Below are positions 3,381 to 28,574 of a stretch of 64,000 nucleotides of DNA, piece after piece. The DNA is from Chlorokybus atmophyticus (lineage: Eukaryota; Plantae; Mesostigma and Chlorokybus algae): assembly GCA_009103225.1 (NCBI GenBank), contig RHPI01000890.1, positions 33,630 to 97,629 on the forward strand. The letters run 5' to 3'. The notes under the pieces are model-generated. The model saw only the letters and a program-made list of their open reading frames with translations, had not been told where the DNA came from and searched no databases. Each line of letters starts with the position of its first letter. Position 1 is the first letter of the stretch. The translations under genes were made by a program, and so were the position numbers.

Positions 3381-3421
3381 TACAGGAGCAAGCGTTGGAG
3401 GTCAAGCTGCTCGCGTGGGAG

Positions 3422-3846
3422 TGTTGAGAGTCATTCCTACATACGATCAGCATCGACCCTCCACACAGGAGTAGAAGGTCGTAAGGACGAGCACTAGGTC
3501 CGGACTTAGCAAGATGGCATCGTCGGACCAGACTCCGGACTCCAGACTGGAGCCTTACTAACTGCTTCGTATCTCCGCGTATACTTACTCATATTAGGCG
3601 TGTGAGAGCTTGTTGGAAAGCTCTGGTTGTAAGGAAGACAACGCAGCTTAGAGCGCGTCAAAAGGCTGAGTATAGCTTACGCAGTGCTTGCAAACGTAGA
3701 CGTGTGTGTAACTGGCTGGTATAAGAACCAGCGGACAACTTGTAATAGAAGAATGTGATGTGACTTGTGTATGCTCTGGTGGCGGTAGCTCTGTCTCTGT
3801 GTGTCTATGCTTGCCTTAGCTACATGTGCATGCTAGTCCTTCAACA
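3422..3846 (+). repeat. LTR family A, 3' LTR of element A2
   Basis: Reverse complement of 424-847; preceded by a PPT. Confidence 0.95.
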
Positions 3847-4159
3847 GCATGCACAAGTGGTCTCACCTGCAGCTCCTGCTCCCCTCCCAGCCAGAGCGCT
3901 ACCACCTTCCGCGGCACCAGTCTTTCATGCACTGCCATCTCCTCCACGAGCAGCACCGGTGATTGCGGGGCAACAATCCTTCTTGCCGCCACCGGCGAGA
4001 CCACAGCACAACGCAACAACCGATGTGGCTTCTGCACCTATCTTACCCCACCCGCTGCAAGTTGAAGCTGGCAGTCTGCCCCAAACTCAGGTACTTTATC
4101 AGTCACTGCGACTCTTGCCGTCCATAGTCGGACACACCATGTGAGTGCTGTATGCGCAT

Positions 4160-8963: not shown

Positions 8964-10317
8964 TCACGTGGAAGTGCAGTGAACGTTCACCCAATACTTG
9001 CCCTCTTGTACACGGGCGCTGTCCTTGTCAAACATGGGGAGCACCTGGACAATGCCTTTTACTTGCTCCAGAGTCACGATATCGAGATGTGGACCGCCTC
9101 GACGCTTTTCCCATTCCAGAGCGATGCACTTTGTGTCGCTCGTCACATCCAGCTTCGTGTACCAGCGGACAAACACGACCTCCTTCCACACGCGCTCGCC
9201 GCTACCACCCCACACCACCACGCGCAGAAAAAGGAGTGCCTGAGCCCACCACGTCACGTTCACACCGTCCTCATCACCTTCCAACTCAAGTGTAGAGAAC
9301 CAAGGCCGCCCATGGAACATCCCAATTGCGCGCGCCATGCTGACTCCTGATGTCATGTACACCGCTGCGCCTCCGTTCACCACGTGAACAGCACGCCACC
9401 CGTCGGCCAACTCCAGTTGTTCCCTCCTCAACCAGCTGTCCAGGGTGGCAGGCAGCTTGTCGGCAAATGGAGTCTTCAAGGCGACTTGGCGGCTACGCGC
9501 AGATCCGCTCCAGTACGGGCTGGACTCCCTCCTTGTCAGCACATCCATCCGTAGCAACTTGTCCGTCTTCTCCATGACATTACAGCACTGCTGCCGCGCC
9601 TGCGCCATGACCGAGCGCATCTCGGGATCCACGACCATGCCATCCTCTCTCACATATTCCGCACAGCTCCATGCCTTCAGGATACATGCCTGGTAGTCCC
9701 GGTGGTTGCCACCACGCGCCCACCGTTTGATATTTTGGGCGTGCGTCTGCTCCATGCGGTTGGCGCTGAACCAATCTGGGTGTCCACTGCTGACAATTGC
9801 CGGCCCAAAATAAGTGAGCTGATGCATCTTCTCGATCTTCCAACCTGACTTCTGTGCAGAATATGACGACAGTAGCGGATGCAACGCTGCAGCTTTGAAG
9901 GCAGCCAGCTCGTTGTCAGCTGTGATCAGGGTCTCTCTTGTGTGTTCATGCGCCTTAAGCAACTTCTTGTTCCACTGGGCAAGCGATGCGGCAGCAATGG
10001 TGAAGAAATCGTTGCCCTCATTGTCGAGCAGCAAACCGTCTGCGAGGACCGGCAGCAACTGCAGCACCGCCACTTTCTCCACCACCTGAAAGGAGTGGTC
10101 GAATAGGAAGAAATCTACTATGCTTGTGGGTGCCTTGAAGTGCGAAACCCGCAGAGTCGCCTTGCATACATTTAGCTTGTGCACATCTGCTCGTGAGCAC
10201 GTGTCGTTGGCTTTTGTGTTCAACACAAAAGCAACACCAAAGATGTGCCTGGCCTGCAGAATCTGTCTCATGGATGGATGCATTCGTTCCTTCGCGGCGT
10301 CGTACACAGCAGCAAGC
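8964..10317 (-). pseudogene. Plavaka-type DNA transposase, C-terminal half
   Basis: KIEKMHQLTYF...FSANRMEQTH and FHGRPWFS...WAQALLFL...VFVRWY resemble Plavaka C-terminal motifs. Joins 26957 in frame (IIDHLL|AAVYDAAKER) once the gypsy insertion is removed. Confidence 0.75.
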
Positions 10318-10556
10318 TGTCGTGCCTGCCATGGTCGAGGGCAACCTTGTCTCGGACAGGTTGCGGAGGAGTGCTAGTGCTGCACGCATGCTAGTGCCGT
10401 GCATTGCATTGGAGTCATGCAAGCAAAAGACAACCCCCCAATCGTGGGCATAGGCTTGAAGATGAGCCTACGCGGTGTTTAGTGCAGTGGACGAGCCGAT
10501 GCCGCTCGCCACCTTTGTGTACAGACTGTGTCGTAGTGCACACAGTCAACAAACCA
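10318..10556 (-). repeat. Gypsy repeat segment A, terminal copy (239 bp)
   Basis: Near-identical to 16332-16570. Confidence 0.95.
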
Positions 10557-10562
10557 CCCCCC

Positions 10563-11227
10563 TGAAGTCAACAAGCCACTACGATAGGTAGTGCTGTGGA
10601 CACAGTTCTTTGCATGAGTGGATAGAATGATACACTGTTAAGTGAGGTGAATGAGTGTGCAACACGTGGATACAACACCCTGACTACCGAAACAACATAC
10701 CACCGTCAAGTTCACAGCAATACAGGCACAGCGCACAAGAGCATGCACCGTGTCTCACGCAGTAAGGGAATTCTTGGCAACCGGGGCAGCGTGCTTCCAG
10801 TTCAAGTCGCTTCACAAGCTCTTTAGAAACAGAGTCTTTACTTCTTGGTACTCCTAGTACTCACAGTACTCACTTACAGTGTCACCAGCCAGTCTGGTGA
10901 CGTGACTTCCTACTTATACATGTCAAATCATGACTGTGCAGTGCCACGCGGGCACTAGGCCAACGGTCACATCGAGGCCTCATGCTATTTCGGAAATCTC
11001 CTAAGACTCGATATAGCACATGTGTCATTAACAGACTTACAACTGATCAGCTACGCGCGGTCCCTACAGACAGGTCTATAAAGTAGCCCTAGCTACATGC
11101 TACATGAGTGGTACAGTAGCTAGCATTAGGCTGGGGCTCGCGCGGTCTTCATGCTGGTAGCCCGGGCGTGGGGCTGGGTGTAGGCATGCTCGAGAAGGAC
11201 TGGCATGCGAGGGTAGATGGCATGACA
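10563..11227 (-). repeat. Gypsy repeat segment B, internal copy (665 bp)
   Basis: Near-identical to 26288-26952. Confidence 0.95.
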
Positions 11228-11680
11228 GCTGTCTGTTGAGAAGCAAGCATGCAAGTGAAGAGGGCAAGCAATGACACACAGGAGAAGGCAACACACTTCC
11301 CGATTTATTACCAACAAACCGCGGGGTTATATACCCGCCAGTCAGTACACAGTTTGTACACACTGCTGGTCTACACGCAACAGCGTCCGATCTACTGAAC
11401 CGAATCCTACGCTGTAAAATGTGTCACGTAGCTAACTCAATAAGCTTTCCAACAAGCTATGCCACGTCCCAAATGACTTAGTATTCTAGGAGATATGACG
11501 ATTCTCCTAGGACCCTTCTCTGCAGTCCGCGGCAGGACCTTTATGTCCGGAGTCTTCGAGGTCCTCCCATCGAGGTCCCTTCTCTTCTCTCTTGTATGCA
11601 GGGCAGGCTGACCGGATGTAGAAATATCTTCAACACTCCCACGCGGGCAGCTTGGCCTCCAACGCTTGGTCTTTTTTCAC

Positions 11681-14600
11681 CTAAGCACATATGTCGAGTC
11701 CCTTGCAACATGCCTTAAACTTCAGCGGTGACAGTGGCTTCGTCATAAAGTCTGCAAGCATGTCTTCCGTATTGCAATATTGGAACTCAACCTCCTTGCG
11801 TGTGACTCTGTCTCGCACAAAGTGATGCATGACATCAATGTGCTTTGTCCTTGTCGAGGCAATGGGGTGCTTCAGCAACTTGATGGCGCCTTGGTTGTCG
11901 CAGTTGATCGTGATACACGCCATCGGGTGCTCCAGATCTGCCATCAGCTTGCGAAGCCATAACGCCTCCTTCACTGCAGCCGATGCTGCCATGTACTCCG
12001 CTTCCGAAGTAGATGCTGCTGTTGTAGGTTGCAGCCTACTGTTCCAGCTCACCACGCCTCCATTCAACTTGAAGACGTACGCCGTGGTGGACCTCCTGCT
12101 ATCGAGGTCACCTGCAAAGTCTGCGTCGCAATAGCCCTCCATCTTTGTGCTTCCGCAACCAAACTTTATGCCAACACTTGCGCTTCCAGCCACGTAGCGC
12201 AATACTCTCTTCGCTGCACGCCAGTGCTCCATGCTTGGTGCAGACATGTAGCGCGCAAGCACTCCAACTGCATGTGCGATGTCGGGTCTTGTGCACACTG
12301 CTAGATAGAGCATACTCCCAACAAGTTCACCATAGGGATACTGAGCCTTGTCGAGTACTTCCTCATCTTTCGCTTTGACGAGGTTGGTGCCGAGTGCCAA
12401 TGGAGTAGACTTGGTCTTTGCTTCGTTGAGTCCGAACTTGGTGACAAGTTGCTTCACCATCTGCTCTTGGCTGATCTTGATTGTGCGTGCTGCTCTGTCA
12501 CGCTCTATCACCATGCCAAGAAATAACTTGACCTCCCCAAGGTCGCGTACTGCGAATGCTTGCTGCAATCCGTGCTTCGTTCCCTTCAGGTCTTTAACTT
12601 GCTTGGCCGTGACGATGATGTCGTCCACATACACGAGCAAGTAAACCTTCTTCTCTTCATGCATGAAGAGCCCCGGATCCGCTAAGGATGCTTTGTAGCC
12701 GAGTTTCTCCAACTCTTTCGTGAGGCGAATGTGCCACACACGTGGTGCTTGTCGCAGCCCATACAAAGCCTTGATCAACTTGCAAGCCATGCCTGGCTCC
12801 CCTTCTGCGTAGCCTGGTGGTTGCTTGGTGTAGATCTCTTCCTCCAGCTCTCCGTAAAGAAAAGCAGTTTTCACATCAAGGTGGTGACACTCGAGGTCTT
12901 CAGCAGCAACCATGGCGATCAATGTGCGGAAGGTTGCATGCTTACTTGCAGGTGCAAACACTTCATTGAAATCCACACCTTCTGTTGCAAAAATCCCTTT
13001 GCCACCAACCTTGCCTTGTAGCGCTCGATGTTGCCTTGACCATCACGCTTCACCTTGAACACCCACTTGACCGGAATGGGCTTCACACCTTGCGGGGGCT
13101 TCTCCAACACCCATGTGTTGTTGGCATGGAGTGATGCAATCTCATCATCCATAGCTCGCTGCCATTGTTCTGCATCTGGTGCTCGCAATGCCTCCTCGTA
13201 GGTGCTTGGTTCTTCACTCTCGTCATTGTGCACACTAGCGATGTGTGCCTTGTAGAAGTCAGGTGCTTGTCTTTCCCTCACTGGGTAGCGTCGAGCTTGC
13301 TCCTGCTGCTTCTGCTTCTCGCCTGCTACAGATGAGCCCTGCTCTTTATTGATGACTGATGCCTCGCCTTCAACCTCTTCTTTGCTTGAAAGCTCTTCAG
13401 GTTGTGCTTTGTCATCTTCATCTTGAGGGTAGAAACCTTCTTCAGCTTCAACTTGTGATGAGCCTTCGTGGAACACGACTTCTCTGCTCACCACAATCTT
13501 GCGCGTGTCCTCCAGTAGGACCTTGTACGCCTTTGAGCCTGGTTCGTAGCCAACAAAGATGCCCTTCTTGCTGGCCGGCTCCAACTTGTGTCGCAATTGA
13601 CTTGGCACAAGTGCATATGCCACACATCCGAACACACGCATGCCACTCACATCTGGCGCTTCACCGTAAAAGAGCTCCCACGGAGTCTTTTGCTCAGAGC
13701 TTATCGGTGATCGGTTGCGGATGTAGTTGGCAGTGAGAACGGCCTCTTGCCACAGACTGTCCTCCAACTTGGTGTCATTGAGCATGGCTCGAACACGCTC
13801 CAACGACGTTCGGTTGAGACGTTCAGCTGCTCCATTCTGCTGCGGAGTGTATGGTGCTGTTGTCTCATGCCGTATGCCTTTGCTGGCGAAGAACTCTTTG
13901 AGCTGGGCTTTGATGTACTCCCCTCCTTGATCACTTCTCATTGCTTTCATCTTCTTGCCCGATTGAATCTCAAGCAATGCAATGATTGTACGCACAGCTC
14001 CAGCGACTTCTGACTTTTGAATCAAAGGGAAGACGATGGAAAGCTTGCTGTAGTCGTCGAGGAATGTTGCAAAGTACCTTACCCCTCCTTTCGCCACAAT
14101 GCGCATAGGCCCGCAAACGTCCATGTGCACAAGCTCGCAGGGATGTTTGCTACTTGAAGAAGATGATGAGAACGGCATGCGATGCTGCTTGGCCAACACA
14201 CAGGGTTCACAGAGTGTAGTTGAAGACGCTTGAAAATCTTCCTTGCTCCCAGTAATGCCCTTCACCATGTTTTCAGCGACCAGGCGTGTGAGGTTGCTAT
14301 AGCCCAAATGCCCGAACCTTCGATGCCAAAGCTCAGCCGTCTCCTTCTTCTTCACAATCATGGCCTTGCTGCCATGAGTCTGCTCCACAATGTAGAGCCC
14401 TCCTCGTTGGGTGCCGACCATGTACTCGACCCCATCCATGCGTACGGAGCAGCGTCCCTCCCGGATCACTATCTCAGCTCCCACGCGCTCAGCAACTCTC
14501 ACAGAAAACAAGCTTGCAGCAGCTCCAGGTACGTGCAATACTTCACGCAGTACCACCTCTCTCTCACCATCACCAATCTTGCATTGAAGCCTCACTTCAC

Positions 14601-15561
14601 CAACTCCTATTGCTTCCAACTCGTGACCACTAAAGCCTTCCACCTTCCTTGTGGTTGACATCTTCCTGTAGTTCTCCATCACCTCCTTGTGCGGTGTGAG
14701 ATGCTGGTCACAGCCTGAGTCAATTGCCCATGAAGTTGTATCAAACTTCCTTGAGGCAGTAAATGCAACACCCTTTTCTTTGCGTTGAGCGTTGCTACTG
14801 GTGCCTGCTTCAGATTGCTCTCGTTGGCGCTTACGACAATCCTTTGAGATATGTCCTTTAATACCACAATAGTGGCATGTGAGATTCTTGAACTTTGAGT
14901 TGCTGCCTTTCGCCTTGTTCTTGTCTTCATAGTTGCTTAATTTCTTGTATTTGTCTCGTGTGTAGAAGGCCACAGAGTCCGCTTGCTCTTCCTTCTTTGA
15001 GACGCGTTGCTCCACAGTGAGCAACTTGGGTAGCACATCGTCTAGGGTTAGCTCCGATGACGATGTCTCGAGCAGAGTAGCGACAACTTCGTACTCTAAT
15101 GGCAGTCCTGCAACAATCGCCAATACGACCTCCGTCTCTTCCATCTTGTGGCCGACGTTGATGAGGTCCGCCCACAGCTCTCTCGCACGTGCAACATACT
15201 TTGTGACCGGCTCGGCCGTCTCTTTATGAAGCGCGCTTAGCTGCTTGCGTAATTGTATCTTTCTGGCGTTGTTCTTGGCTTGAAATACGGCTGCAAGCTT
15301 CTCCCAAGCTTGTCTGCCATCTTCACATGCTGTGAGCATGGGAAAGTGATGTGGCTTGCAGTTAAGCACCATCAATGAATGTGCTTCAACTGAGTATTCA
15401 AGCCAGATGCTTCCTTCTCCTGCTCTTGGTGCAGATGCCTTCGGGTCAACATACTTCCACATCTTCTTGTGGATAAGTAGTGCCTTCATCTCTACGCACC
15501 AAGTGCTGTAGTTGTTTGTGTCCAGCTTTGTGATCAGCCCTTTATCGTAGCTTGCCTCCAT
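11681..15561 (-). pseudogene. copia gag-pol (gag, CCHC knuckle, protease, INT, RT, RNase H) with a single 1-bp frameshift
   Basis: CHYCGIKGHISKDC, WAIDSGC, LWHRRFGH, HMDVCGP, YVDD, ADFMTKPL. Frameshift near 12983: CAACAGAAGG versus CAGCAGGAAGG in copia A2. Confidence 0.95.
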
Positions 15562-15664
15562 CTTTGCCGCGCCTGCTTTCTTCTTGCAGTTAGCACTTGA
15601 GACTTGCTTTGATAATCTTCACGTGTTGTGACTTGAGTGACTTTGTTGACTTTAGTATCTTTAA

Positions 15665-15870
15665 TCTACACTTCACTCTTGAGTGACTTCAATGACTTCG
15701 GTCTTGAATGACTTCGGGCTTCACTTTACTCTTCAGCGCCTTCAGTCTTGAGTGACTTCGGTCTTCACTTCACTCTTCAGCGCCTTCAGTCTTGAGTGAC
15801 TTCGATCTTCTCTTCACTCTTCAGTCTTGAGTGACTTCGATCTTCACTTCAGTGCACTTTATCACTTTTC
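15665..15870. repeat. Degenerate tandem array (CTTCAGTCTTGAGTGACTTCG-based units) in the copia B 5' leader
   Basis: Repeated cttcactcttcag(cgccttcag)tcttgagtgacttcg units; a similar CTTCAA-rich tract occurs at about 39715-39925 in copia C. Confidence 0.8.
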
Positions 15871-16331
15871 TTCACTTTGCTTTCTTTCTCTTTCTCAAAC
15901 TCTTCACGCGTAGTGTGGGCCCATAACCTGTTGAAAAGCAAGCATGCAAGTGAAGAGGGCAAGCAATGACACACAGGAGAAGGCAACACACTTCCCGATT
16001 TATTACCAACAAACCGCGGGGTTATATACCCGCCAGTCAGTACACAGTTTGTACACACTGCTGGTCTACACGCAACAGCGTCCGATCTACTGAACCAAAT
16101 CCTACGCTGTAAGATGTGCCACGTAGCTAACTTAATAAGCTTTCCAACAAGCTATGCCACGTCCTAAATGACTGAGTATTCTAGGAGATATGACGATTCT
16201 CCTAGGACCCTTCTCTGCAGTCCGCGGCAGGACCTTTATGTCCGGAGTCTTCGAGGTCCTCCCATCGAGGTCCCTTCTCTTCTCTCTTGTATGCAGGGCA
16301 GGCTGACCGGATGTAGGAATATCTTCAACAC

Positions 16332-16570
16332 TGTCGTGCCTGCCATGGTCGAGGGCAACCTTGTCTCGGACAGGCTGCGGAGGAGTGCTAGTGCTGCACG
16401 CATGCTAGTGCCGTGCATTGCATTGGAGTCATGCAAGCAAAAGACAACCCCCCAATCGTGGGCATAGGCTTGAAGATGAGCCTACGCGGTGTTTAGTGCA
16501 GTGGACGAGCCGATGCCGCTCGCCACCTTTGTGTACGGATTGTGTCGTAGTGCACACAGCCAACAAGCCA
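16332..16570 (-). repeat. Gypsy repeat segment A, internal copy, preceded on the minus strand by PPT AGGGGGGG
   Basis: Matches 10318-10556; C7 run at 16571-16577. Confidence 0.95.
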
Positions 16571-16629
16571 CCCCCCCTGAGATTCTGGGGTAGCCCTCTG
16601 CTCCAGAACTCAGTTCCTACCGACTGTGT

Positions 16630-18020
16630 GGGGGACCGTTGATGCGGCAGTCATCGCATCAGTACTCCCACAAGGGTACTGCGTTCAGTGGAGGGTCAAG
16701 GGAGTAGCAGTGCATGCCTTGATTACAGCCGTCGCATAACATCATCAATGGGTCGTCGTCGGCGCTGCCACACTTCTCGCATCGGGTGCTGCGCAGCGGA
16801 CGCGGGTGCTGGATCTTGGTGAAGCCAGCAATGTAGGGGAGATGACAGGGCGCGCAGTTGACCATGTTGTCCTTCATGCGCTCGCCTCGTTGTCCCAACA
16901 GGTCCAGTACCCCTGTGGGGTGCACCTTCAATACCTTGTAGACAGCACGCCCGACGGAAGTATCGAGGGTGTCGCGTGTAGCCGCCATACGGTAGACGAA
17001 GTCTCCTGACTCGAAGCGGCGCTCCCGCTCCTTGTAGAAACCACTGCGCACACGCTCGTAACGCAGCGTGTCGCGGTGCTGCGCGATGCGCAGGTTGTTG
17101 AAGGCCATGGGGACTGTGTGTTCGAACAGCGCACTGCGCACTGTCAGGTCATACAACATCTCGTCGGGGTTGTCGAGATTGTCCACCACTCTATCGACCT
17201 CCTGCTGCGCGCGGAAAGGGAGCAATGGCTGCCTTCCGAACAGTAGATAGTATGGACTGTACTCTCGCAGGGCTGCCTGCTTGGACAGCCTGTAGCCCAT
17301 TTCTACCCATGGGAGGTGATCATCTCAGGTATTCTTCTCGTAGGCGAGGACGTATTTGCGCAGTGCCTTCTTGATGGTCTGCACGGTACGCTCGGCGAGG
17401 CCGTCAGCCTGCGGGTGGTCGCGTGAGGTGCGACGGTGGTCGATGAAGCATCTGTCGATAAGCTTGTCGAAGGCTCCTCTGAACTCCGTACCCTGGTCGG
17501 TGATGACTTCAGCGCAGCTGCCGAAGCGTCCGAGTACATGAGAGAGGAAAGCCTGGGCTACTCCCTCACTGCTCTTGTCGGGCAGGGGCACCAGCTCCAC
17601 CCACTTGGAGAAGTGCTCGATCATGACGAGGATGTAGCGGTTGCCTCGCGCTGAGGGCGCTAGGTCTCCGAGGATGTCCAGTCCCCAGCGGTAGAACAAC
17701 CCGGAAATGGGAAGGGGATGCAAGGTGGCATTGCGCGTGTTGAGGCTGGCGCGAACCATGTCACACTGCTGACAGTTGCTGACGAACTCCCGCACCTGTC
17801 TGTGCACCCCATACCACCAGTACTGGGTCCTGACCAGGCTGACCGTGCGCTTGACGCTGAAGTGCCCGAGCTCGGTGTGAAGTGAGGAGATGATGCCTTC
17901 ACGTGCAGCTGGTGTGGGGACCTCCTGATCTGCATTTTGTATCCGTCGATACAGCCTGTCGTTGGCCCAGCGGTAACGCTGAGTGCGTCGCCGGACGCGG
18001 TCCTTCTCGCGTGCGCTCAT
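16630..18020 (-). pseudogene. gypsy integrase (HHCC zinc domain, rve) with a C-terminal PHD finger
   Basis: LHTELGHF...CQQC, RWGLDILG, ITDQGTEF, DGLAER; then CEKCGSADDDPLMMLCDGCNQGMHCYSLDPPL...*CDDC. In-frame TGA stops. Confidence 0.9.
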
Positions 18021-18362
18021 GCCTACTGGAAGTTGTCCAGTCTGAAGCAGTGCGAGGGATGGCTCGTCCAGCCAGTTGTCTTGTCATGTGTCGGTGGGTG
18101 CCAGCTCCTCATCATCCACCTCAGGGTCGGCAGCGATTGCTTCTTCTGATAAAGGATCGGTGGTGGTGATGGCGGGCTCGAGAGCGGGCATGTCCCCGTC
18201 TGGTGCTGCCTCAGCGATCTGAGTCCTGCGTCCTGAGCGTAGCGCAGCGACAGCGAACATGGTGGCCACACCTGAAGGTGCAGCTGTAGGACCCAACTCA
18301 TGTCGGGCGCCTGTGGCGTCGTTGGTGCTGAGGTGGGGGTTACGGCTGAGGCCATCCGCATC

Positions 18363-19620
18363 CTAGTTGGCAAGGCCTGCACGGTGTTCCACCTCGAAGT
18401 CGTACTCCTGGAGCAGCAGCGCCCATCGTGCTAACTTTCCTGTCAAGTGCTGGTTGTTCATTAGCCACTTGAGGGGTTGATGATCAGTGACCAGTTGGAA
18501 CTGCCGTCCAAACAGAAAGGGTCGGAAGAAGGAGATGGCCCACACTGCGGCGAGACACTCCCCTTCGTAGCTGCTGTAGTTGGCCTCAGCACTGTTGTTG
18601 CTGCGGCTGGCGTACGACACTACACGCTCGCTTCTTGTTGTTGTCGTGCTGTACGAGCACGGCCCCCATGCCGAGCTTGCCCCAGTTTGTGTGCAGGATG
18701 AACAACCTGGTGTAGTCAGGGCGTTGCAGAATGGGAGCTGTGGTGAGGCGGAGCTTCAGCTCCTGAAAGGCCTCATGTTGTGCCTCCTTCTACAAGAACT
18801 CGGTGTCCTTCTTCAGTAGTTCGTTGAGAGGCCTTGCGATCTTGGCAAAGTCCTTGACAAACCGGCGGTAATAGTTGGCAAGGCCGAGGAAGGCCCGCAG
18901 CCGCGTGAGGTCTGTGGGGGCAGGGATAGCCACCAGTGCCTCCACTTTGGCCTGCTGTACGTACACACCATGGGGCACAATCATGTGTCCTAGGTAGGGT
19001 ACCTTGTGGGTGAAGAAGGTGCACTTGTCAGGGTGCACCGTCATCCCGACTTCCTTCAGCCTCTGTAGCACCTCTTCGATGTGCTAGAGATGCTCCTCAT
19101 TGCTGTGACTGAAGATGAGGATGTCGTCGATGTAGCAGCGTGCGAAGTCCAACCCCTTGATAGCTTTGTCCATGACGCGCTGGAACTTGGCCGGAGCGTT
19201 CTTCAGTCCGAAGGGCATGACCTTCCACTGGTACAGCTGCCGGTTTCCCCAGAAGGAAGTCTTGTGCTTGTCCTCCTCCTTGATGGCGATCTGGTTGTAC
19301 CCTTGGCGCATATCCAGGATACTAAAGACCGTGCAGTCTCCTACATCGTCAAAGATGCCTTCTGCGGTAGGCATTGGATATCTGTTCTGCTTGGTCTTGT
19401 TGTTGAGGGGGCGATAGTCGCCAAACATGCACCGGTCTGTCCAGTTGCCTGCTGAATCTTTCTTCAGGGGCATGACGGTCGCGGCCGCAAAGTCCGATGT
19501 GGACTCCTTGATCAGGCCTGCATCTAGCAGCGCCTTGCACCTCTGTTCCACCAAGTCTTCTTCTAGCTTGGAAAGGCGGTACTGTCTTCTGAACACCGGT
19601 TCGGTGTCCACTAGTTCAGT
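18363..19620 (-). pseudogene. gypsy reverse transcriptase and RNase H
   Basis: DYRPLN, MPFGLKNAPAKFQR, YIDDILIFS, FLGLANYYRRFV, EGECLAAVW, VTDHQPLKWL; TAG stops and a frameshift. Confidence 0.95.
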
Positions 19621-19929
19621 GTCCATCTGGTATGCTGAGCAGATGCCCAGCTCTTTCACACTGAAGCTGAATTGGCTCCTCCACTTGTTGAGGAGAGCCT
19701 CGAGTTGCTCTCGAGTATGGCCTGTGGCCAGCGGTCCAATGGCGTGGGACCATGAGGTAGCGTTGGCGACCACTGGGATGTCTTCCACAGTGACTGCTGC
19801 CTGCTCCTCCATGTGGGCGGTCTCGAGAGCGGTGTGTGCTGCTATGGTCTTTGAAAAGCGAGCAATCCACCCCCCAGCCAGGTGTTCGAGCTTCTGAACG
19901 GACACATGGCGGTCCTGGAGAGCAAAGCA

Positions 19930-20890
19930 CATTTCCAAGTACCACACCATGCTGTTCTGATCCATGGCGCGCCCTAACAGCTGACACTGTTGACTGGTTG
20001 TCAGCGTGGAGCTTGTGATGCTGCCCGGAGAGAATCCCATAGCACGCTCGCGCTCACGAGCATTGGGTTCTTCTAGCTGTCCAGTGTTGGAGTCTAACAC
20101 CATGCCGTTGCCTCTATTGCGGAACGCGTAGGAGCCTGGATAGGATACAAGTGTGGGTAGTGCGCGGCGCGGCTGACCAAGCTGATTGCACTGGTAGAAG
20201 TGGTGGTGGTCAAGGCGTGTGACCGGTTGCGCTGTGCGTCCAGGGTCCGGGATGTCATCGACGACGAGATTCCGTGGCCGATTGCTGTATAGGTATTCTG
20301 CCAGAAACAGGTCCTCCACGATGGCCAGGTTGGTCCACTTGGCGCGGACGCGGTGTGCGCGAGATCCATGACGCGCGGCGTTGATTTTGAGAGGATGCCC
20401 CAGCAAGGAGCATACTTGCCGATAGGCCTTGGCGACGTGATGCCGCTTGTCATCCTCGGAGTGCACATTCTCGATGATGTACCCCAAGGGCCAAGCGATC
20501 TGACTGGTCTGCAGGAGTTTGATGACTCTCATTAGCTCCCAGTTAAGCTGTGAGCGAGGATCAGAGAGCCCGTGGCCTCTGCCTGCCCTGGAGTGCCCTT
20601 GACACTCCCATCCTGCTATCAGCAGGTCAATGTTGCCGACTGCCTGCAGGTGATCCTTGGTAATCCAGCGGATGTCCTGCGGCAGAGCCTTCTGACTCCC
20701 TTGCAGTGCTGACAGCGGTAGCTGCTGCGGGTAGCGCTGGTGCAGCTGTCGTAAATGATGGCTCAGAGCCTCTTGTGCATGAGGGTCAGGGTCACAGTAG
20801 AGGTACTTGGTGACTGTTGTTCCTGTGTTGAGGACAGCCGCAAGCCCACTGCCTATGCCTCCGAACAGCTCCAGCACGGTGATGCCTTGT
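19930..20890 (-). CDS. C5 cytosine DNA methyltransferase domain embedded in gypsy pol, in frame with RT
   Basis: Inside uninterrupted ORF 19084-21489: motif I VLELFGGIG, IV AGWECQGHS, VI YIIENV, VIII RAHRVRAKWTN, IX ERERAMGF, X QLLGRAM. Confidence 0.9.
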
Positions 20891-21369
20891 TGTCGGCGGA
20901 ACATGTGGAACTCCACAACTCCAGTAGCTATGTGGTACTGCTCCTGCACTGTAGCCTGGTCTTTGTAGACAGGGAACTGTGCAGTGAGCTGAGGCCTGGT
21001 CAGTAGCATGTGTGCTGCTACTTGTGCGCTCCAGCGACGCTCGGATGGCTCCTGAAAAGCCACTTTTTTGGTGACAGTCTCATGAGACTCATCGTACGGT
21101 GTAGGAGAGTCCTCTTCAGCGTTTAGGCTCGGGCTCGAGCTCGTTGCAGTTGTCCTCGGCTGCGTTCGGGCACGAGGCACACGTGAGCTTTTTGTAGGAC
21201 TGTAGGTGGCTGCTGCGGCCGACCTTCGTTGCGAGCGGGCCTTGGCCACCAGTTCGAGAGGTAGGAATCCCTGCTCCTCTCCATCATCCTCATCCCAATG
21301 CGGTCGAAACCATGCTTGCTCAGTCCAGCAGTCCATCCCCATGCCGACAGGGAAGTTGCAATCCTGTCC

Positions 21370-21630
21370 CAGCAGTAGGTCAAAGGACCCGGCATCGGTG
21401 ACCACACACCTTTGTACAATCTCGGTGCTGTGGGAAGGGTTTAGTCCGGTGAGGCGGATGCTCACAGCCCGCTTGGTAAGGCCGAGCACCTTGTCGCGGT
21501 TGCCGGTTGCGGTGTCCAGCTGTTAGGGACAGGGAAGCAGCTCAGCGCTGGTGATGCCGAGATCTCATGCGAGGTAGCGCCCAATTATGACAGGCTGTGC
21601 TCCAGTGTTCAGCATCACGCGTTTGGGTGC
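21370..21630 (-). pseudogene. gypsy aspartic protease (catalytic D appears as N)
   Basis: KRVMLNTGAQPVIIG...FDLLLGQD; TGA at 21565-21567. Confidence 0.7.
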
Positions 21631-23401
21631 CCGACCGTTGACGGTCACGTGCTTGCCTTGGTTGGCGATCATGGCTGCATTGGCGTTGATGCGCAGCCTC
21701 TTGAAGCGACGGAACCTCTTGCGTGGAGAGACTGTTGCTTTACTCTCATCTGCGGGGCCTGACCGTAGGGCAGCCAGGGCTCCTCTACCTGATGGATCTT
21801 TTGGACCTCCTTGTCCTCGGCTTTGTCCAAACCGTCCTTGTCGCGGTTGCTGGTACACGCGTGGTGGCCTAGGCACTGGAGGTGCTGCTGCAACCTGTCC
21901 AAGTGGAGGTGCAGGAGGGTTGACCCTCTGTGCAGCTGTTGTCATGCCAGGAGGAGTGGCCAGTGGCTGTGGCGGGAACCCTGGAGGACCTGGTGTTTGC
22001 GGGACTGCCTCTCGTGCAGCCTGCTCCTCTGCATAGGTCCATCGCACAGCATGGGCTGCCTCTCTGACTAGTGTACCTTCCCATGTAGCCGTCGCATTGT
22101 TGTCCACGTCTATCCAGCAATGGTTCTGAGGCATGGGCTGCAGGTACACTGCACGTAGGAGCCGCGCTCTTATGTCGTGGGTGATGGTGGGCACCCTGAG
22201 GATCCCCGCCATGTAAGCATCCCATCTGCCGTTGACCACTCCCACTTCCAGCACTGTTATCGCTCGTGCGCGTACAGTGAGGCGGGTATCTGGCTGTTGG
22301 ACATGCTGCTCGTAAGCAGCGGCGATGCGCCTGCGCTGACGTCTTGCCTCCACTCCTGGCAAACTCAGTATAGCCTCCAGAGCTCCCTTCAGAGTGTCAG
22401 TGGCGGCGGAAGCCACTTCATCATAGGCTTGCCGTATGGAGCGAAGGAATGCGTCCACCCACGCTATTCTGGTGCCGAATGCGAACAACGGGACTGCGGG
22501 ATGGTTGGTGACCAGCCACGTCACTAACCGTGCGCGTGCCGCGTTGCCATTGTCTCGCATCCCAAGCATCTGCCGAAGTCCAATGCCTTCTTGCCGATGC
22601 AGCATGGTTGCTTGTCGTAACAGAGCAGTGCGTAGTTGTTGCTCTCCAACCAGTCCTGCTCCATCTCTTTGTGTACACCCTTGTGGTGTAAGGTAACCCC
22701 TCCCTGGCTCCCTTTGGTCCTCAGGTAGATCCTCCACCAGCGCAGGCAGCAACGGGGCGATCACCCCCCTGGTTTGTTGAGCCAACGCCCTCGCTTGGTC
22801 AGAGTTGGTCTCGACGAAGAACGGAGTGGTGCTGGAGGATGGACCAGCAGTTGGTGACTGAGGTATTGGTGCACGCGTAGCTTCAAGAGCTTGTTCACGT
22901 GCAGCAATGGCGGCAGCTTGATCCTGTCGCCAGTGATATGCTTGTTCCAGTGCGTGGTAGCGCTAATGAAGGCGAGCGGTTGCAGGAGGTCCGAGTGCTT
23001 CATCAGTGCCCAAAGGCAGGTCGGCTGCGTCGGCGATGCGCTGCTGGACGGTGTCTCGGTGGTCCCGATAAGTGTGCAGCGGGCTGGGTTCAAAGGTGGT
23101 GGTTGGCATGCGTGCAGGCTAACGCGGGGCGGTCTGCATGTTGTTGTGCAACGCTCAGAACAGCTGCAGGGCCAACTCCAACACTACAGGTGGGCTGTAG
23201 CTGATCAAGAACACCCTGTCACGCATCGGAGGTGCAGTGCCAGCAAGGATTTCATCTTCCAATTGGTGTTGAGTGAGTGCTGGAAGGGTGTGAACCTCTG
23301 GGAGCGGGAAGACGCGATCATCGCGGGCGACACGCGTGGTGCGCTCCCCCCCCCCGACCGAAGGCGATGGTAGTGGGGTCTGCTCCGCGCAGGATGGTTT
23401 C

Positions 23402-26053
23402 CTATGCTCGCTCGGCTTGCTGACCAGTTGAGACAGCCTGAGTGACGTCGAGAGCGGGCAGAGTGGCTGCGCGCGTCGCTGCAGAGACAGCGGGCTCGAC
23501 GATGGCAATTGTGGCAGTTGCGACGATACCGGTCGGTGGTGCGAGAGTTGTTTCGACGCCTACGGACAAAGGCACTGCTGCAATGGGAAGTGCACCGCCC
23601 ACTGGTGCAGACTCGGTAGAGATGGCGGCTGTTGCCATTGTGCTCACCAGTGTCGGCGTCCCGGTGTCCATCGGTGTACCAGGTTGTGGTGCAACTGGAG
23701 TGGGTGCTGCTGACGTTGGTGGAGTCGACGTTGTAGCCGGTGTGGCTGTTGCTGCGGCGGCAGCACCACTGGTGGCTTCGGAGGAGGTGCCTGCTGATGT
23801 TGTTGCAGCTTCCCCTCGTGCTCGTCGTGATGGTTGCACGCGGGACGGAGTGTTCCTGTCTCTCTCGCGTTTTGCAGCCATCAGCGCCCATCGGGCAGTG
23901 TAGCAGGCGCGGTAGTCCTGCTCCTTGTCTTCCTCCAAGCGTGCCATACGCGCCATAAGGGCTGCCATATGGTCATCAGCTGGTGGGTTGGCTGAAGCCT
24001 TGGCGGCAACAGCAGCAGCGCGCGGACGTGTCTCTGGTCCCTTACGCTGAGGAGGTCTGTTCTTCCCCCTGTAGCCTTGCTCTTCCTTGCGAACACTGGC
24101 GTTGTTGTTGTTGTTACTGCCACCAGCGTTGTTGCTGTTGTGGGCTCCAGTGTTGTGTTGAACGACTAGCATGCACATGTAGCTGAGGCAAGCATAGACA
24201 CACAGAGACAGAGCTACCGCCACCAGAGCATACACAGGTCACATCACATTCATCTATTACAAGTTGTCCGCTGGTTCTTATACCAGCCAGTTACACACAC
24301 GTCTACGTTTGCAAGCACTGCGTAAGCTATACTCAGCCTTTTGACGCGCTCTAAGCTGCGTTGTCTTCCTTACAACTAGAGCTTTCCAACAAGCTCTTAC
24401 ACGCCCAATATGAGTAAGTATACGCGGAGATACGAAGCAGTTAGTAAGGCTCCAGTCTGGAGTCCGGAGTCTGGTCCGACGATGCCATCTTGCTAAGTCC
24501 GGACCTAGTGCTCGTCCTTACGACCTTCTACTGTGTGGAGGGTCGATGCTGATCGTATGTAGGAATACTCTCAACATGTTGTTGCTATTGTAGCCACTGA
24601 AGTGGTTGCTAGTGTGGCCTCAAGTGTTGTTGCTGTTGTAGCCACCGGAGTAGTTGTGGTTGTAGCTGTTGGCGGGCCTCAACTCTGGGAACTTGAGCCA
24701 GCAGACTGACTCCACATGACCAGTCTTGTGACAGTGGTCGCAAACCAAAGTTGAGTATTCTTCGGTGCACTCCTTTTGGTAGTGCCCATGCCGTCCACAG
24801 CGATGACACAGCACAGGGGCAGCAAGTGCAGCATGAGCTGACCGTTTCCCTTTGTCGCGTGCTGGTGGAGCGTCCCGGCCACGGTCGCGGCGAGGAAGCT
24901 CAGTTGTCGTGCTGACTACAGGCCGTGCGGCGCTGCGGTTGGTGTCTAGCACTGCCTTCTCATACACCAAGCGCTTGTGGATGACTTGTGCAGTCTCGAA
25001 GGCTTCTTTGAGGGTGTAGCCAAGGGGCCTGCTGTAGTTCAGAGTCAGGCGTGTCGACTCGCTCAGAGCAGCATCCAACTCATTGACGTATATCACTGCA
25101 GCAGCCTCCTTATTGACAATCTTGTAGTCAGTGTTCTTCAGCAGGCCTTCCAGTCTGGAGTACAAGCGGAGGGGATCCTCATTGGGCTTGCGTCGGAAGC
25201 GTCTCAGCTCCTCAACCTTGGTGGTGGTCTGAGAAGGGAAGGTGCGGCGCAGGGCAGCGTACAGGTCCTTGAGTGGAGAATCAGAGATGGCAGCACCTAC
25301 GGTGATGGCTGGTGCGCGCAGTGCTACTGACCCGAGGGTGAAAGCACTGCCTCCTGCACGAGAGCCAAGTGTTGCTGGAGGTAGAGGAGTACCCCACTCT
25401 GCGGCTGCCGCTTGCTGTACAGCTCTTTGTTCCTCAATGATGATGGCAGAACGGTCAAGGATGCGGACTCGACGTGTGGCCTCCTTGGACGCAACTTCTG
25501 CAGGGGTCAAGTTGCCAAGTACCAACTCTGGTTCCTCCTCCTCTGCCTGCTTAAGAGCTGCAGCTATGGACAAGCCTGTTACTGCAACTGAAGTGGCAGG
25601 TGGAACGACACCTGCTGGACGGTGCAGAGATGCAGATGCTATGGTGCTGGCAAGCTCGATATAGCCGTCTACTCGATGCAGTTCAGCAACGGACTTCCAG
25701 ACATCGTGTGCTTCATGATCAAGATACTGAGCAGCAATGTGGAAAGAGATCTCATCTGACCAGTCTTTGTTCTTCAGAGCTTGCTGCCGCATCTTGGAGT
25801 GGAACTTGATGATGAACTTATCCAGCGAGGTGGTGCCGGCACGTTCGGAGAAGCGCAGGGATGTGGTTGAACTGGAAGACTTCATCTCGTTGTCGTCGCT
25901 GTCCAATGATAGTGGAGAAGCTTGATGACGAGGAGTAGAGTAGAGCGGGGTGAAGCTGGAGATGGAGCGCGAGCCTGCTGCTGCGGTCGATGCTCCCGTC
26001 ACTGGTCCGCTCGTAGGTGAGGTTGGTGGTTGGGCTCCAACTGCTGAGGTCAC
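23402..26053 (-). pseudogene. gypsy gag with two CCHC zinc knuckles, split by a stop and a solo LTR
   Basis: CHRCGRHGHYQKEC and CDHCHKTGHVESVC. The N/S/G-rich tract continues across the stop at 24620 and the LTR at 24156-24576. Confidence 0.85.
24156..24576 (-). mobile_element. Solo LTR of copia family A
   Basis: Near-identical to 424-847 (3-bp deletion); 5-bp TSD TGTTG at 24151-24155 and 24577-24581. Confidence 0.97.
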
Positions 26054-26287
26054 CCTCGTCTATTGGGGGGAATGGGGTGGGCCTGCTCATACAGCTGGTC
26101 CAGAGGTGAAAGGGTAGGGTGCTTGTGCTCTACCGTCTATCCTGATGCTGTTACCACCCAACATACTAGTGCTTGTACGCACTATGTGATGACAATGATA
26201 ACGAATGCCCAGCGATCTATCCCTGGGTGCAGACTGCACTACCTGATGCAGATTGCAACACACTCACTTGTGCAAAGAGGGTGACAC

Positions 26288-26952
26288 TGTAAGTCAACAA
26301 GCCACTACGATAGGTAGTGCTGTGGACACAGTTCTTTGCATGAGTGGATAGAATGATACACTGTTAAGTGAGGTGAATGAGTGTGCAACACGTGGATACA
26401 ACACCCTGACTACTGAAACAACACACCACCGTCAAGCTCACAGCAATGGCAGGCACAGCGCACAAGAGCATGCACCGTGTCTCACGCAGTAAGGGAATTC
26501 TTGGCAACCGGGGCAGCGTGCTTCCAGTTCAAGTTGCTTCACAAGCTCTTTAGAAACAGAGTCTTTACTTCTTGGTACTCCTAGTACTCACAGTACTCAC
26601 TTACAGTGTCACCAGCTAGTCTGGTGACGTGACTTCCTACTTATACATGTCAAATCATGACTGTGCAGTGCCACGCGGGCACTAGGCCAACGGTCACATC
26701 GAGGCCTCATGCTATTTCGGAAATCTCCTAAGACTCGATATAGCACATGTGTCATTAACAGACTTGCAACTGATCAGCTACGCGCGGTCCCTACAGACAG
26801 GTCTATAAAGTAGCCCTAGCTACATGCTACATGAGTGGTACAGTAGCTAGCAGTAGGCTGGGGCCTGCGCGGTCTTCATGCTGGTAGCGGGCGTGGGGCT
26901 GGGTGTAGGCATGCTCGAGAAGGACTGGCATGCGAGGGTAGATGGCATGATA
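26288..26952 (-). repeat. Gypsy repeat segment B, 5' terminal copy containing the promoter, R and U5
   Basis: Copy of 10563-11227; terminus TA (TG in the other copy). Confidence 0.95.
26599..26645 (-). promoter_or_regulatory. TATA box and predicted transcription start of the gypsy element
   Basis: TATAAGTAG begins at 26645 on the minus strand, 32 nt upstream of GGTGACACTGTAAGT (26613-26599). Confidence 0.6.
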
Positions 26953-28574
26953 AAGCAGGTGGTCAATGATGCCTCCCAGCACATGCATTGCGTCAGTGGC
27001 AAGACGAGAGTAGCAGTCAGCTCCCGGCACCCGCGACTGTCGCCAACCCCACAGTGCATTCTGTTGCCAAACCACATTGCCTGCTTTCACGGAAAGCCAT
27101 TCATCCTCACGAATGCCGATAATTTGACCATTACCTCCTCGACATGCATGGAGTGCTGCTCTTTGAAAGCCTTGGCTGTCTGGCGTGCATTCCTAACACC
27201 GCTATGCAGGTCCGCCCGCAGCTGACGTATTGCTGGTATGTAGAAGGCCTCGGTTCTCAATTCCCGGTCCTCATCCATCTCCAACAGATCTGATTTGGTG
27301 ACGAGACAAACATTGCAAGGATGTCGTGTTTGGTTGCCCGACACAGTGCGTGCGAGTGTGGCAGTCTCCTACAACACGATAAACTCAGATGTTCTACTGA
27401 CAACATCCTCCATACACTGTTTGCTGGCAGGCTGCATCCGATCACAACCATTCATGCCCACTACCGGCAAATCGCTGATGTAGTTGGCAAGCGCGAGAAA
27501 TTCACGACGCTCGATGCCATTCGGGTCGATGAGCTGCAGACCTTCTCAACTCGCCCGCTTCACATCCCCTAACACTACATTCAAAGCATCATGAAAAATC
27601 TCACGTTTCTGAATGGAGAATGATTCCTTGCCCTGCGCCCAGGTGGGATGCCCGGCCACTGCGTGAACCACCGGCAGAAGCGCTATCATAACAACCCCCA
27701 TGTTGCTAGCATACATGTCCCAATTGTAGTTGGCAAGCGATGCCATCAAAGGGTAGCCAGAGCGCTTGCCCGCGCTGTCCAACGTGGTCTTGTCACTGTA
27801 CAGAATGGCAGGCGCTAAGTAGGACGCTTCCCCCACCTCTCTCCTCAAATCCACCTCCGCATCCTTCCACTCATCGCCCGTAGAAGGATGGCCAAAGCTA
27901 TGCTCGTCATTAGTGTACTGGAGATTGAAGCCATTGGCGGCATGTGGATTGCCATACAACCGCGCGAGCCATACCTGCTCCGACCAAGAGCATTACTTAC
28001 TATGCTGGCCTCAGAATAGATACTGCATCGATACTGCATTAGGTACTGCATTTCACAGACCTTGGCCGGCATATATGTGACGCAGATGTCTTGATCCTCA
28101 GGGTCTTCAGGCTTGCGCAGGTCAGCCGTCATGTAGTTTTGATATGGCAGCACACTCGCATGTGCATATGTGACATGGCTCTGATGGTTGAAGCACATGC
28201 ACCGCACACCGTGAACACACCTCAGACTGAGAGAAAGCAATCGTGGTCCGGAGGTAGCTGGCCACATGCACACCGGTCTCCCACTGGAGCTCTTCCGTCA
28301 GGAAGTGTGCATTTCGGATGCACTTGATGATCCGCCCCATGTCGGAGGCCGACAGGCCTTGGCCATTGTTGCACTGCACGAATGCCACTGCAAGAGCATG
28401 CTCTGAGCCATACCACCTAGATTCCAACGCGTGCGAAGGGACGCCTCCACTTCCATGTTGGCGTGCCACAGGTTTCTCAGGCACACGCACACATCGAAAG
28501 CCCTCGTTCACTACCTCCTCCTCCTGTTGCTGCTGTGCGTGTGTCTTCCGAAGGAATCCTTCAGCATCAAGCAT
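26953..28574 (-). pseudogene. Plavaka-type transposase, N-terminal half with introns
   Basis: HPSTGDEW...PAILYSDKT...YPLMASLAN, LANYISDLP, CNVCLV, DAMHVLGGIIDHL; TGA near 27546. The start position is approximate. Confidence 0.8.

Follow-up and report, generated by a model that had tools for sequence, protein, structure and literature searches.

How a retrotransposon equipped with a DDE integrase comes to be inserted with its terminal repeats in the order known from tyrosine recombinase elements is the question raised by a locus of the alga Chlorokybus atmophyticus. The window analysed comprises 64,000 nucleotides of contig RHPI01000890.1 (positions 33,630 to 97,629; assembly GCA_009103225.1), and all coordinates refer to this stretch. 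Ty3/gypsy elements (Metaviridae) have two complete LTRs, 5'-TG..CA-3' ends and a target site duplication (TSD) of 4-6 bp. Elements of the PAT, Ngaro and DIRS type encode a tyrosine recombinase (YR), lack a DDE integrase and produce no TSD. Their split direct repeats, one at the 5' end and the order other-first-other at the 3' end, resemble those of the window element, which in contrast carries an H2C2-rve integrase, a 4-bp TSD (GCTT) and TG..CA-type ends (with a G>A change at the 5' end).

The element spans positions 10318-26952 and is read on the minus strand in the order B1, PBS, gag-pol, PPT, A1, GC, B2, G6 and A2. The 5'-terminal repeat B1 (26288-26952) starts at 26952 with TATCATGCC, which differs by one G>A change from TGTCATGCC, the start of the internal copy B2 (10563-11227; start at 11227, end ...GACTTCA); both copies are identical at 652 of 667 positions. 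The internal repeat A1 (16332-16570), located directly after the PPT, and the terminal copy A2 (10318-10556), ending ...GGCACGACA at 10318, share 234 of 239 positions. No repeat A is present upstream of B1 at the 5' end of the element. Instead of two complete identical terminal LTRs, there is B only at the 5' end and A-GC-B-G6-A at the 3' end, and the integrated ends are T(G>A)TCATGCC ... GGCACGACA. The original prediction had given this repeat order with its coordinates, and all repeats were found in place; the permuted terminal repeats and the ends at an internal palindrome are confirmed.

The PPT (G7, 16571-16577, preceded by CTCA) has a counterpart at the equivalent place in the relatives, AGGGGGG(N2-3). 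The G6 spacer at the B2-A2 junction (10557-10562) is similar to the PPT and looks like a remnant of the plus-strand primer. The PBS (ACAGTGTCACC, 26280-26290, directly after B1) pairs at 11 of 11 positions with GGTGACACTGT (26603-26613), which lies in B, 28-32 nt after a TATAA box (26645-26641); a pairing of this kind is also present in the two relatives in the window, R1 and R2. Judging from position and complementarity, GGTGACACTGT is likely to be the start of the transcript (its first 11 nt) and to act as a Tf1-type self-primer. Self-priming Ty3/gypsy elements of the Tf1/sushi type have a transcript 5' end complementary to the PBS, to which the 11-nt stretch near the putative transcript start of the window element, complementary to a PBS directly after U5, would correspond. 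A snap-back inverted copy of the 5' repeat (X), found after the PBS and integrated at a half-site in two relatives (L046 and L047), fits self-priming as well. Tf1 itself integrates conventionally, with two full LTRs. The definition of the LTR as A-GC-B, proposed from the PPT, agrees with the positions of both PPT and PBS and with the putative self-priming complement downstream of the TATA box in B.

A1 and B2 stand 5.1 kb apart in the window, with a 5.1-kb Ty1/copia element between them (11234-16330, minus strand; Pfam Retrotran_gag_2, rve and RVT_2) which does not belong to the gypsy element. It has 402-bp LTRs (TGTTG..CAACA, 98% identical) and a 5-bp TSD, GACAG, at 16335-16331 and 11233-11229, and its insertion point is exactly the palindrome of the A1-GC-B2 junction. 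Removal of the copia element together with one TSD copy restores GGCACGACA-GC-TGTCATGCC, each half of which corresponds to one of the integrated ends, as had been claimed. A solo copia-type LTR (TGTTGAAC..CTCAACA, 24156-24576, 5-bp TSD TGTTG) is likewise foreign to the gypsy element, and both copia-type insertions are later than it.

The coding region, all on the minus strand, has the domain order of Ty3/gypsy elements (RT, RNase H, integrase). The gag ORF (24620-26053) gave a weak zf-CCHC Pfam match for its zinc knuckle, below the cutoff. The pol region (18363-21489) is broken by frameshifts and has homologues in Marchantia, Closterium and Calypogeia. Its ORF at 19084-21489 encodes a DNMT domain (PF00145, E = 3.4e-9, residues 270-350) upstream of RVT_1, and RNase H (RT_RNaseH) is found at 18363-18620. 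PF00145 is also carried by the homologous database proteins, the closest of which (34-49% identity, best 44-49%) stem from Marchantia, Closterium, Calypogeia and metagenomes. The integrase (H2C2 zinc finger and rve core, 17325-18020) is followed at its C-terminal side by a PHD finger (16659-17300), both identified with Pfam; the region encoding them (16659-18020) contains two stops and is 51% identical (tblastn) to the integrase-PHD protein of the relative L005. No PF00589 or other recombinase match was obtained in 17 minus-strand ORFs of the element (7 scanned at E<=0.01 and 10 at E<=1, a part of its ORFs of at least 70 aa). The element is a real but decayed Ty3/gypsy element of a streptophyte clade carrying DNMT3 and a PHD finger, with the DDE integrase and without the YR, as predicted, within the ORFs scanned.

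The insertion site lies within a Plavaka-type transposase gene. The TSD copies, GCTT in element orientation and AAGC on the plus strand, are located at 10314-10317, where the empty-site contig ends, and at 26953-26956, flanking B1. When the flanks are joined without the element, a stop-free frame of 529 codons results, with a Plavaka Pfam match just upstream of the element (27546-27959, minus strand); both the AAGC duplication and the restored Plavaka frame had been anticipated. In contigs of two public runs (X1 and X2), 9958-10317 runs straight into 30 bases of 26957-26986, with 12 differences in 360 nt, an empty site that is either allelic or paralogous. The uninterrupted target in them indicates that 10318-26952 entered as one unit. 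Among the short unitig contigs shown, none bridges the junction between flank and A2 or that of B2, G6 and A2.

Two relatives in the window share the B boundary, as had been noted before. The 5' B repeat of R1 (40704-41334, minus strand, 81% identical) starts with TGTCATGCC at 41334, where it abuts the gag of R2, R1 being located inside this gene. The 5' B-type repeat of R2 (41955-43143, minus strand) starts with TGTCACGC at 43143 and contains a nested miniature element (42543-43076). The permuted layout was also found in Calypogeia, Closterium and ENA/JGI contigs, and in Marchantia (L001 and L003) with the palindrome CACGACA-GC-TGTCATG and the TSDs CCCT and GGTT. The palindrome core CGACA-GC-TGTC is kept in the relatives from Marchantia, Calypogeia, Closterium and moss-associated metagenomes. 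In a census that included 80 moss-metagenome loci, approximately 21 independent long copies (B-internal-A-GC-B-A), approximately 17 short copies (B-internal-A) with the 3' end exactly at ...CGACA, and one double form (B-int-A-B-A-B-A, L004) were obtained. None of the long and short copies has conventional LTR ends. The ends of the relatives are TGTCATG...CGACA, with a perfect 4-bp TSD in 9 of 11 copies, and all relatives examined possess PBS and PPT but not two conventional LTRs. The layout had been suggested to be the norm of the family, and it holds for the clade across streptophytes.

Independent copies in Marchantia and in moss have an identical, flush B-A joint, which fits very precise joining but also a templated process. 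Of the predicted G-run at the LTR-LTR junction, the G6 at B2-A2 is real, but the joint is flush in all other relatives read, and the run is peculiar to the family of the window element. The right tips in the RT frame of Marchantia, Calypogeia and L005 lack CA and should therefore serve the integrase poorly, in contrast to the palindrome, which provides TG..CA in every case.

A similar structure has been reported for KnitGypsy-Dnmt3 of Klebsormidium nitens (de Mendoza et al. 2018, PMC5890265), a Ty3/gypsy element of another family in another host, whose pol includes a C5 methyltransferase of the DNMT3 type. The legend of Fig. 4c of that paper gives a DIRS-type repeat structure with Gypsy domains, and both the DNMT inside pol and the DIRS-like order (one-genes-other-one-other) recur in the window element. 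In its available passages, no TSD, palindrome, PBS/PPT frame or mechanism is given for KnitGypsy-Dnmt3, and the term PHD, as for the finger on the integrase, does not occur. The permuted layout is already in print (2018, Klebsormidium), but within these passages it is not explained. The suggested link to a multi-LTR group, Troyka, did not hold. According to the part of Kojima 2025 (PMC12440569) available, Troyka is an LTR-retroelement lineage of animal phyla outside Metaviridae which also has non-standard termini; it is, however, not a multi-LTR group, and it has 3-bp TSDs and 5'-CG..CG-3' termini, compared with the 4-bp TSD, TG..CA ends and streptophyte hosts here.

The explanation to which we give a somewhat better than even chance is that 10318-26952 is one decayed insertion, for which the DNA tips would have been joined before the integrase cut the palindrome inside the LTR. 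PPT and self-primed PBS would set reverse transcription and thereby the LTR, A-GC-B. Rather than the tips of this LTR, the DDE integrase would use the halves of the internal ...CGACA|GC|TGTC..., so that integrated copies would begin with TG of B, end with CA of A and be flanked by a 4-bp TSD. The full-length form B-int-A-GC-B-A would contain the equivalent of two LTRs, rotated in their order. As a first step, the U5 and U3 tips of the DNA copy would be joined, in a 2-LTR circle or an equivalent DNA reiterated at the 3' end, and in the family of the window element only, a PPT-derived G6 would be enclosed at the junction. Cutting of the palindrome in the 5' LTR would follow, in the way retroviral integrases cleave LTR-LTR junctions in vitro; cleavage of palindromic junctions is documented for PFV and HIV-1 (PMC1180852, PMC1905944, PMC4372172). 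The 2-LTR circle originally proposed is a plausible candidate route.

As in retroviral 2-LTR circles, a DDE integrase would cleave a CA-NN-TG palindrome to yield two processed ends. Retroviral DNA with joined ends is likewise a possible precursor of integration, and PPT or PBS remnants can occur at the joints. In retroviruses, however, the palindrome is made by joining the LTR tips and represents a side route, whereas in the window element it is built into the RT-defined LTR, cutting would take place away from the joined tips, and no form other than the rotated product was found in the clade.

Given the arrangement of PBS and PPT, the B-A joint could not be copied from RNA and would have to be rebuilt in every cycle. 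Since the two palindromes of a symmetric 2-LTR circle are identical, B-A-B-int-A would be expected as often as B-int-A-B-A. The former was not seen at any of approximately 16 informative 5' ends, where no A-type repeat lies upstream of the 5' B-type repeat, nor at the five loci with a short 3' end for which 5' data were also at hand; therefore, either the palindrome must be chosen directionally or the substrate lacked the symmetry of such a circle. The copy in the 5' LTR might be preferred as the first, or for long the only, double-stranded palindrome after plus-strand transfer. If true, such a kinetic asymmetry would leave B-int-A-B-A as the only permutation ever found. The asymmetry that a symmetric circle needs in addition is a point against end joining with palindrome cutting, and so is the short B-int-A form. 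It makes up approximately 45% of the moss copies, shows the same decay as the long form, and may be the primary product of linear DNA with both LTRs cut, for which a circle would not be required.

A linear route without any circle appears unlikely, even though a single rule would cover the series with no, one or two extra units and the missing permutation (approximately 17 short, 21 long and one double copy). Template switching of the reverse transcriptase at the U5 tip would add variable extra 3' LTR copies, and the integrase would take the outermost half-sites, TG of B in the first LTR and CA of A in the last, to give B-int-A (dead on arrival), B-int-A-B-A (replicative) and B-int-A-B-A-B-A. 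In the window, CAG is common to the joint and to the bases immediately preceding the G-run of the PPT, as expected from a microhomology switch onto the minus strand that takes the G-run with it; in other lineages the microhomology of 1 nt is at chance level. L046 and L047 demonstrate that aberrant RT products do integrate at a half-site; the half-sites of the linear DNA, however, would be 110-660 bp away from its tips, far from where retroviral-type integrases usually process. Against the linear route, all six young copies are long, compared with 15 long and 17 short among the old moss copies (one-sided Fisher approximately 0.02), and this points to a later origin of the short forms through A1 x A2 deletion.

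Less probable still is a logic as in DIRS and Ngaro elements, in which the whole B...A unit including the B-A joint would be inherited via RNA running from B1 into A2, the internal A-GC-B would template the rebuilding and joining of the missing tips, and the integrase would open the rebuilt junction. The repeat order, which is that of PAT, Ngaro and DIRS elements and appears as DIRS-type in the legend in PMC5890265, speaks for it, and it would account for the directionality as well as for the identical flush joints in independent copies. Against it stand the PBS, which follows B1 immediately, and the PPT, which immediately precedes A1, both conserved in the clade: in the standard scheme, minus-strand DNA would jump to B2 and never copy the B2-A2 joint or A2. 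The 4-bp TSDs and TG..CA ends, moreover, are signatures of an integrase, and the scanned ORFs encode no YR.

A one-off rearrangement, a recombination of two copies or a misassembly, with normal copies being conventional, could be imagined from the unbridged junctions and the many nested repeats of the locus, but is close to refuted and barely credible in view of the exact TSD, the empty-site contig, the B boundary shared by R1 and R2, the recurrence of this layout, with the palindrome and the length of the TSD, in dozens of metagenome contigs and four further taxa, and the lack of any conventional copy among the relatives. Mobilisation in trans by the YR of a DIRS, Ngaro or Crypton element elsewhere in the genome, for which the split-direct-repeat order is the sole support, is highly improbable as well, since YR elements produce no TSD but 9 of 11 copies have an exact one of 4 bp together with TG..CA ends, the clade has retained an integrase of its own, which L003 and L005, both young relatives, encode in intact form, and the scanned ORFs of the element contain no YR domain.

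With end joining and palindrome cutting as the preferred explanation, it is possible, though short of an even chance, that the clade as a whole has uncoupled its integrase frame from the RT frame, with end-joined DNA as the obligatory substrate and cleavage at a built-in att palindrome. LTR finders that expect two equal terminal repeats will mis-annotate or miss such elements in algae, liverworts and mosses, and with DNMT3 and a PHD finger aboard, the true element boundaries matter for studies of transposon-borne methylation. If joined ends and the internal att palindrome are true, the clade would offer a natural example of productive LTR-LTR joined DNA, which for retroviruses is a dead end. 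Such a system would be relevant to the long-standing question of circles as integration precursors, and would show the end recognition of an integrase drifting away from the termini defined by reverse transcription.

The main copy, a decayed Ty3/gypsy insertion on the minus strand (10318-26952), reads in element orientation flank, GCTT, B1, primer-binding site (PBS), gag-pol, polypurine tract (PPT), A1, a G, a 5.1-kb insert, a C, B2, G6, A2, GCTT and flank. According to repeat finding and self-BLAST of the window, A2 (10318-10556) and A1 (16332-16570) are identical at 234 of 239 positions, B2 (10563-11227) and B1 (26288-26952) at 652 of 667. B1 begins with TATCATGCC and is directly followed by the PBS (ACAGTGTCACC), while the PPT (CTCA-G7) lies directly before A1. 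Both A copies terminate in GGCACGACA, and B2 extends from TGTCATGCC to GACTTCA. The insert is a nested Ty1/copia element (11234-16330; 402-bp LTRs, 98% identical; 5-bp target-site duplication (TSD) GACAG; Pfam Retrotran_gag_2, rve and RVT_2), and once it is taken out the palindrome GGCACGACA-GC-TGTCATGCC is restored. The A-GC-B palindrome of the original prediction is thus seen only after excision of a copia element that was not mentioned there, although the predicted coordinates leave room for it. Since the sole internal junction is split in this way, a search of the whole window revealed no second, intact palindrome.

The copia element (11229-16335 with its TSD) hit the att-like palindrome exactly, with GACAG of CGACAG/CTGTC as target. 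Its LTRs have diverged by 2%, the same as the gypsy repeats, and it therefore entered soon after the gypsy element. A copia-type LTR of 425 bp is present as a solo copy within the gypsy element (24156-24576, TSD TGTTG), and two further copies face in opposite directions within 1-3847 (424-847 and 3846-3422). With copia 11234-16330 as reference, the segment between these two LTRs is oriented opposite to the adjacent gag-side fragment, which may reflect an inversion or two abutting fragments.

Reverse transcription of the element can be framed by the two priming sites. G7 directly adjoins A1, and the 11 nt that follow B1 (26290-26280) are perfectly complementary to GGTGACACTGT at 26613-26603, a stretch located 28-32 nt downstream of a TATAA (26645-26641). 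This would be a self-priming arrangement of the Tf1 type. The pairing is kept in both relatives inside the window, R1 and R2. From the G7 before A1 and the putative self-priming PBS after B1, linear DNA should carry LTRs of the structure A-GC-B, in line with what had been predicted.

When the flanks are joined (26953 upward to 10313 downward), a frame of 529 codons runs across the joint without a stop. Immediately upstream, an ORF at 27546-27959 on the minus strand matches Pfam Plavaka (E = 7e-14). On the downstream side, a host ORF of 447 aa gave neither homologous proteins nor a Pfam match; the putative Plavaka identity of the host gene is carried by the upstream ORF only. An imperfect tandem duplication of approximately 2.5 kb (28038-30579 and 30607-33044, 80-88% identical) is located upstream of the Plavaka fragment. 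Stronger evidence than the joined frame comes from contigs of two sequencing runs of one sample (X1 and X2), which cover 9958-10317 and continue with 30 letters corresponding exactly to 26957-26986. They differ from the window at 12 of 360 nt and represent the uninterrupted target, either allelic or paralogous. The open frame and the empty site together mean that 10318-26952 arrived as a single piece with a 4-bp TSD, as proposed originally. No contig bridging flank and A2, or B2, G6 and A2, was found among 24 of about 200 short contig pieces from public runs, and the filled locus is thus without independent long-read support.

Pfam domains on the minus strand comprise a weak zf-CCHC in gag, DNA_methylase and RVT_1 (19084-21489), RT_RNaseH (18363-18620), Integrase_H2C2 and rve (17325-18020) and PHD (16659-17300). 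No recombinase domain was identified in 17 scanned minus-strand ORFs (7 at E ≤ 0.01, 10 at E ≤ 1), which agrees with the expected rve integrase and lack of a tyrosine recombinase. Because pol is spread over several frames and the integrase-PHD (IN-PHD) region contains two stops, the main copy is dead. Within 16659-21489, pol has a C5 DNA methyltransferase domain ahead of the reverse transcriptase and, following the integrase, a PHD finger; both are kept in relatives, namely in the polyprotein of the ENA contig L006 and in L005, L088, L089 and L090.

Both relatives in the window start at the predicted B boundary. The B repeat of R1 (81% identical) begins with TGTCATGCC at 41334, flush against gag codons of R2, and that of R2 begins with TGTCACGC at 43143, abutting unrelated DNA. 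The 5' ends of both are without A, and their 3' ends fall outside the window. R1 (36765-41334) is truncated at 36765, which is equivalent to position 25032 in the gag of the main copy, and contains a nested element of 2.7 kb. The 378-bp LTRs of this element (37696-38072 and 39992-40369, 93% identical) show a distant relationship to the copia LTR (11234-11635). The B-type repeat of R2 harbors a miniature element (42543-43076), the direct repeats of which are 79 bp long (42543-42621 and 42998-43076, 89% identical).

With the methyltransferase-reverse transcriptase ORF as query, proteins with 34-49% identity come from Marchantia, Closterium, Calypogeia and metagenomes. At two loci of Marchantia the repeats are arranged as X-int-Y-GC-X-Y, in which X and Y are the counterparts of B and A and int is the internal region, with the palindrome CGCACGACA-GC-TGTCATGG, the PPT AGGGGGGCGA and the TSDs CCCT and GGTT. 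The Closterium locus (L002) carries GCGACA-GC-TGTCGC, and the same palindrome core is found in ENA and JGI contigs (L005, L088, L089, L090). This core is the only sequence common to the alga and liverwort LTRs. The Calypogeia locus (L004, TSD AGGT) has one additional X-Y unit (X-int-Y-X-Y-X-Y at 15454-16429) with two identical X-Y joints; the extra unit could stem from unequal exchange or from further reiterated DNA.

Metagenome contigs were scanned with an alignment of three full-length IN-PHD sequences, yielding 80 loci, mainly from moss-associated samples, on which the repeats were mapped and from which duplicates of one site were dropped. Counted approximately, and together with the copies described above, about 21 independent copies have the long 3' form (int-Y-GC-X-Y, then flank), about 17 the short form (int-Y, then flank, ending exactly in ...CGACA) and none a conventional 3' end. 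All of approximately 16 informative 5' ends pass from flank into X without a preceding Y, all five short-3'-end loci with 5' data have a single X, and a perfect 4-bp TSD surrounds 9 of the 11 copies with both ends. The split-repeat layout is therefore the norm of the clade, as suspected. In a moss metagenome copy (L046:3242-3878, L047:1293-1929), int-Y-GC-X-PBS(CTCAAAGAAC)-TATG is followed by an inverted X (about 181 to 1), stopping exactly at the inverted TGTCATG half-site; it resembles a self-primed reverse transcript that snapped back on itself and was nevertheless integrated at a half-site. L006 (1-16317 of the 21.3-kb contig ctg158368_0x_c) holds a tandem array of almost identical full-length elements (period 8426 bp), in which one PPT-Y-(CACGACAGCTGACGC)-X block separates the internal regions. 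This array could be chromosomal, or concatemeric or extrachromosomal DNA; the suffix "c" may, at a guess, denote a circle called by the assembler.

The short form B-int-A could be primary, arising from palindrome-cut linear DNA or a 1-LTR circle, or secondary, through later deletion between A1 and A2. Integrase decay did not differ between the forms (median stops plus frameshifts per 100 aa: long 1.38, short 1.46), and none of the insertion sites in the census occurred in both forms across samples. The six young copies are without exception long (that of the window, L001 and L003 from Marchantia, L005, L088 and L089), while the old moss copies comprise 15 long and 17 short ones (one-sided Fisher approximately 0.02, on a post hoc count). 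On this mixed evidence, deletion is tentatively favoured.

DDE integrases need a CA at the tip. The right tips in the reverse-transcription frame lack it (...GATTTTA in Marchantia, ...CATCGTTT in Calypogeia, ...CGTTTT in L005), and TG..CA is always provided by the palindrome. With a PBS after B1 and a PPT before A1, the standard scheme would never copy the B2-A2 joint from RNA, so that we infer its renewal in every cycle by joining of the U5 to the U3 tip. The G6 at the joint of the main copy, one G fewer than in the PPT, looks like a retained copy of the plus-strand primer, as had been predicted, but the joint is flush in all other relatives read, which makes the G-run a peculiarity of this family rather than a general feature. 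CAG is common to the B1-PBS and B2-G6 borders and the bases before the PPT, making a microhomology-guided switch or joining possible. Cleavage of palindromic LTR-LTR junctions is documented for retroviral integrases (PMC1905944, PMC1180852, PMC4372172), and by analogy cutting at CA/GC/TG with 4-bp staggered insertion would be ordinary chemistry.

A closed 2-LTR circle would contain two identical palindromes, and if it were opened at random, B-A-B-int-A and the observed form should be equally frequent; no B-A-B-int-A copy was found in the census (about 16 informative 5' ends). The predicted opening of a 2-LTR circle is thus reasonable but unproven, and requires a directional step. Either the palindrome of the 5' LTR would be preferred, speculatively because after plus-strand transfer this LTR would be double-stranded long before the 3' LTR, or linear DNA with reiterated 3' LTRs would be cut at its outermost half-sites. 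An LTR consisting of B alone is at odds with the missing polypurine tract before B2, with the 4 bp after B2, which differ from those before B1, and with TSD and empty site, which enclose B1 to A2. That A is an independent small element inserted twice is contradicted by the A-GC-B-A order and palindrome kept in distant relatives, in which A and B are otherwise unalignable.

The split-repeat order is shared with KnitGypsy-Dnmt3, for which a figure legend gives the order without TSDs, palindrome or mechanism (PMC5890265); our literature search for split direct repeats or permuted LTRs in Gypsy elements with an integrase returned nothing beyond this 2018 legend. The suggested tie to Troyka did not hold, as these elements are described with 3-bp TSDs, CG..CG termini and animal hosts (PMC12440569). 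PAT, Ngaro and DIRS have only the repeat order in common with the main copy. The split-repeat arrangement is real, and to its description are added here the empty-site contig of the main copy, the copia insertion within the palindrome, the count excluding random circle opening and the frequency of the short form.
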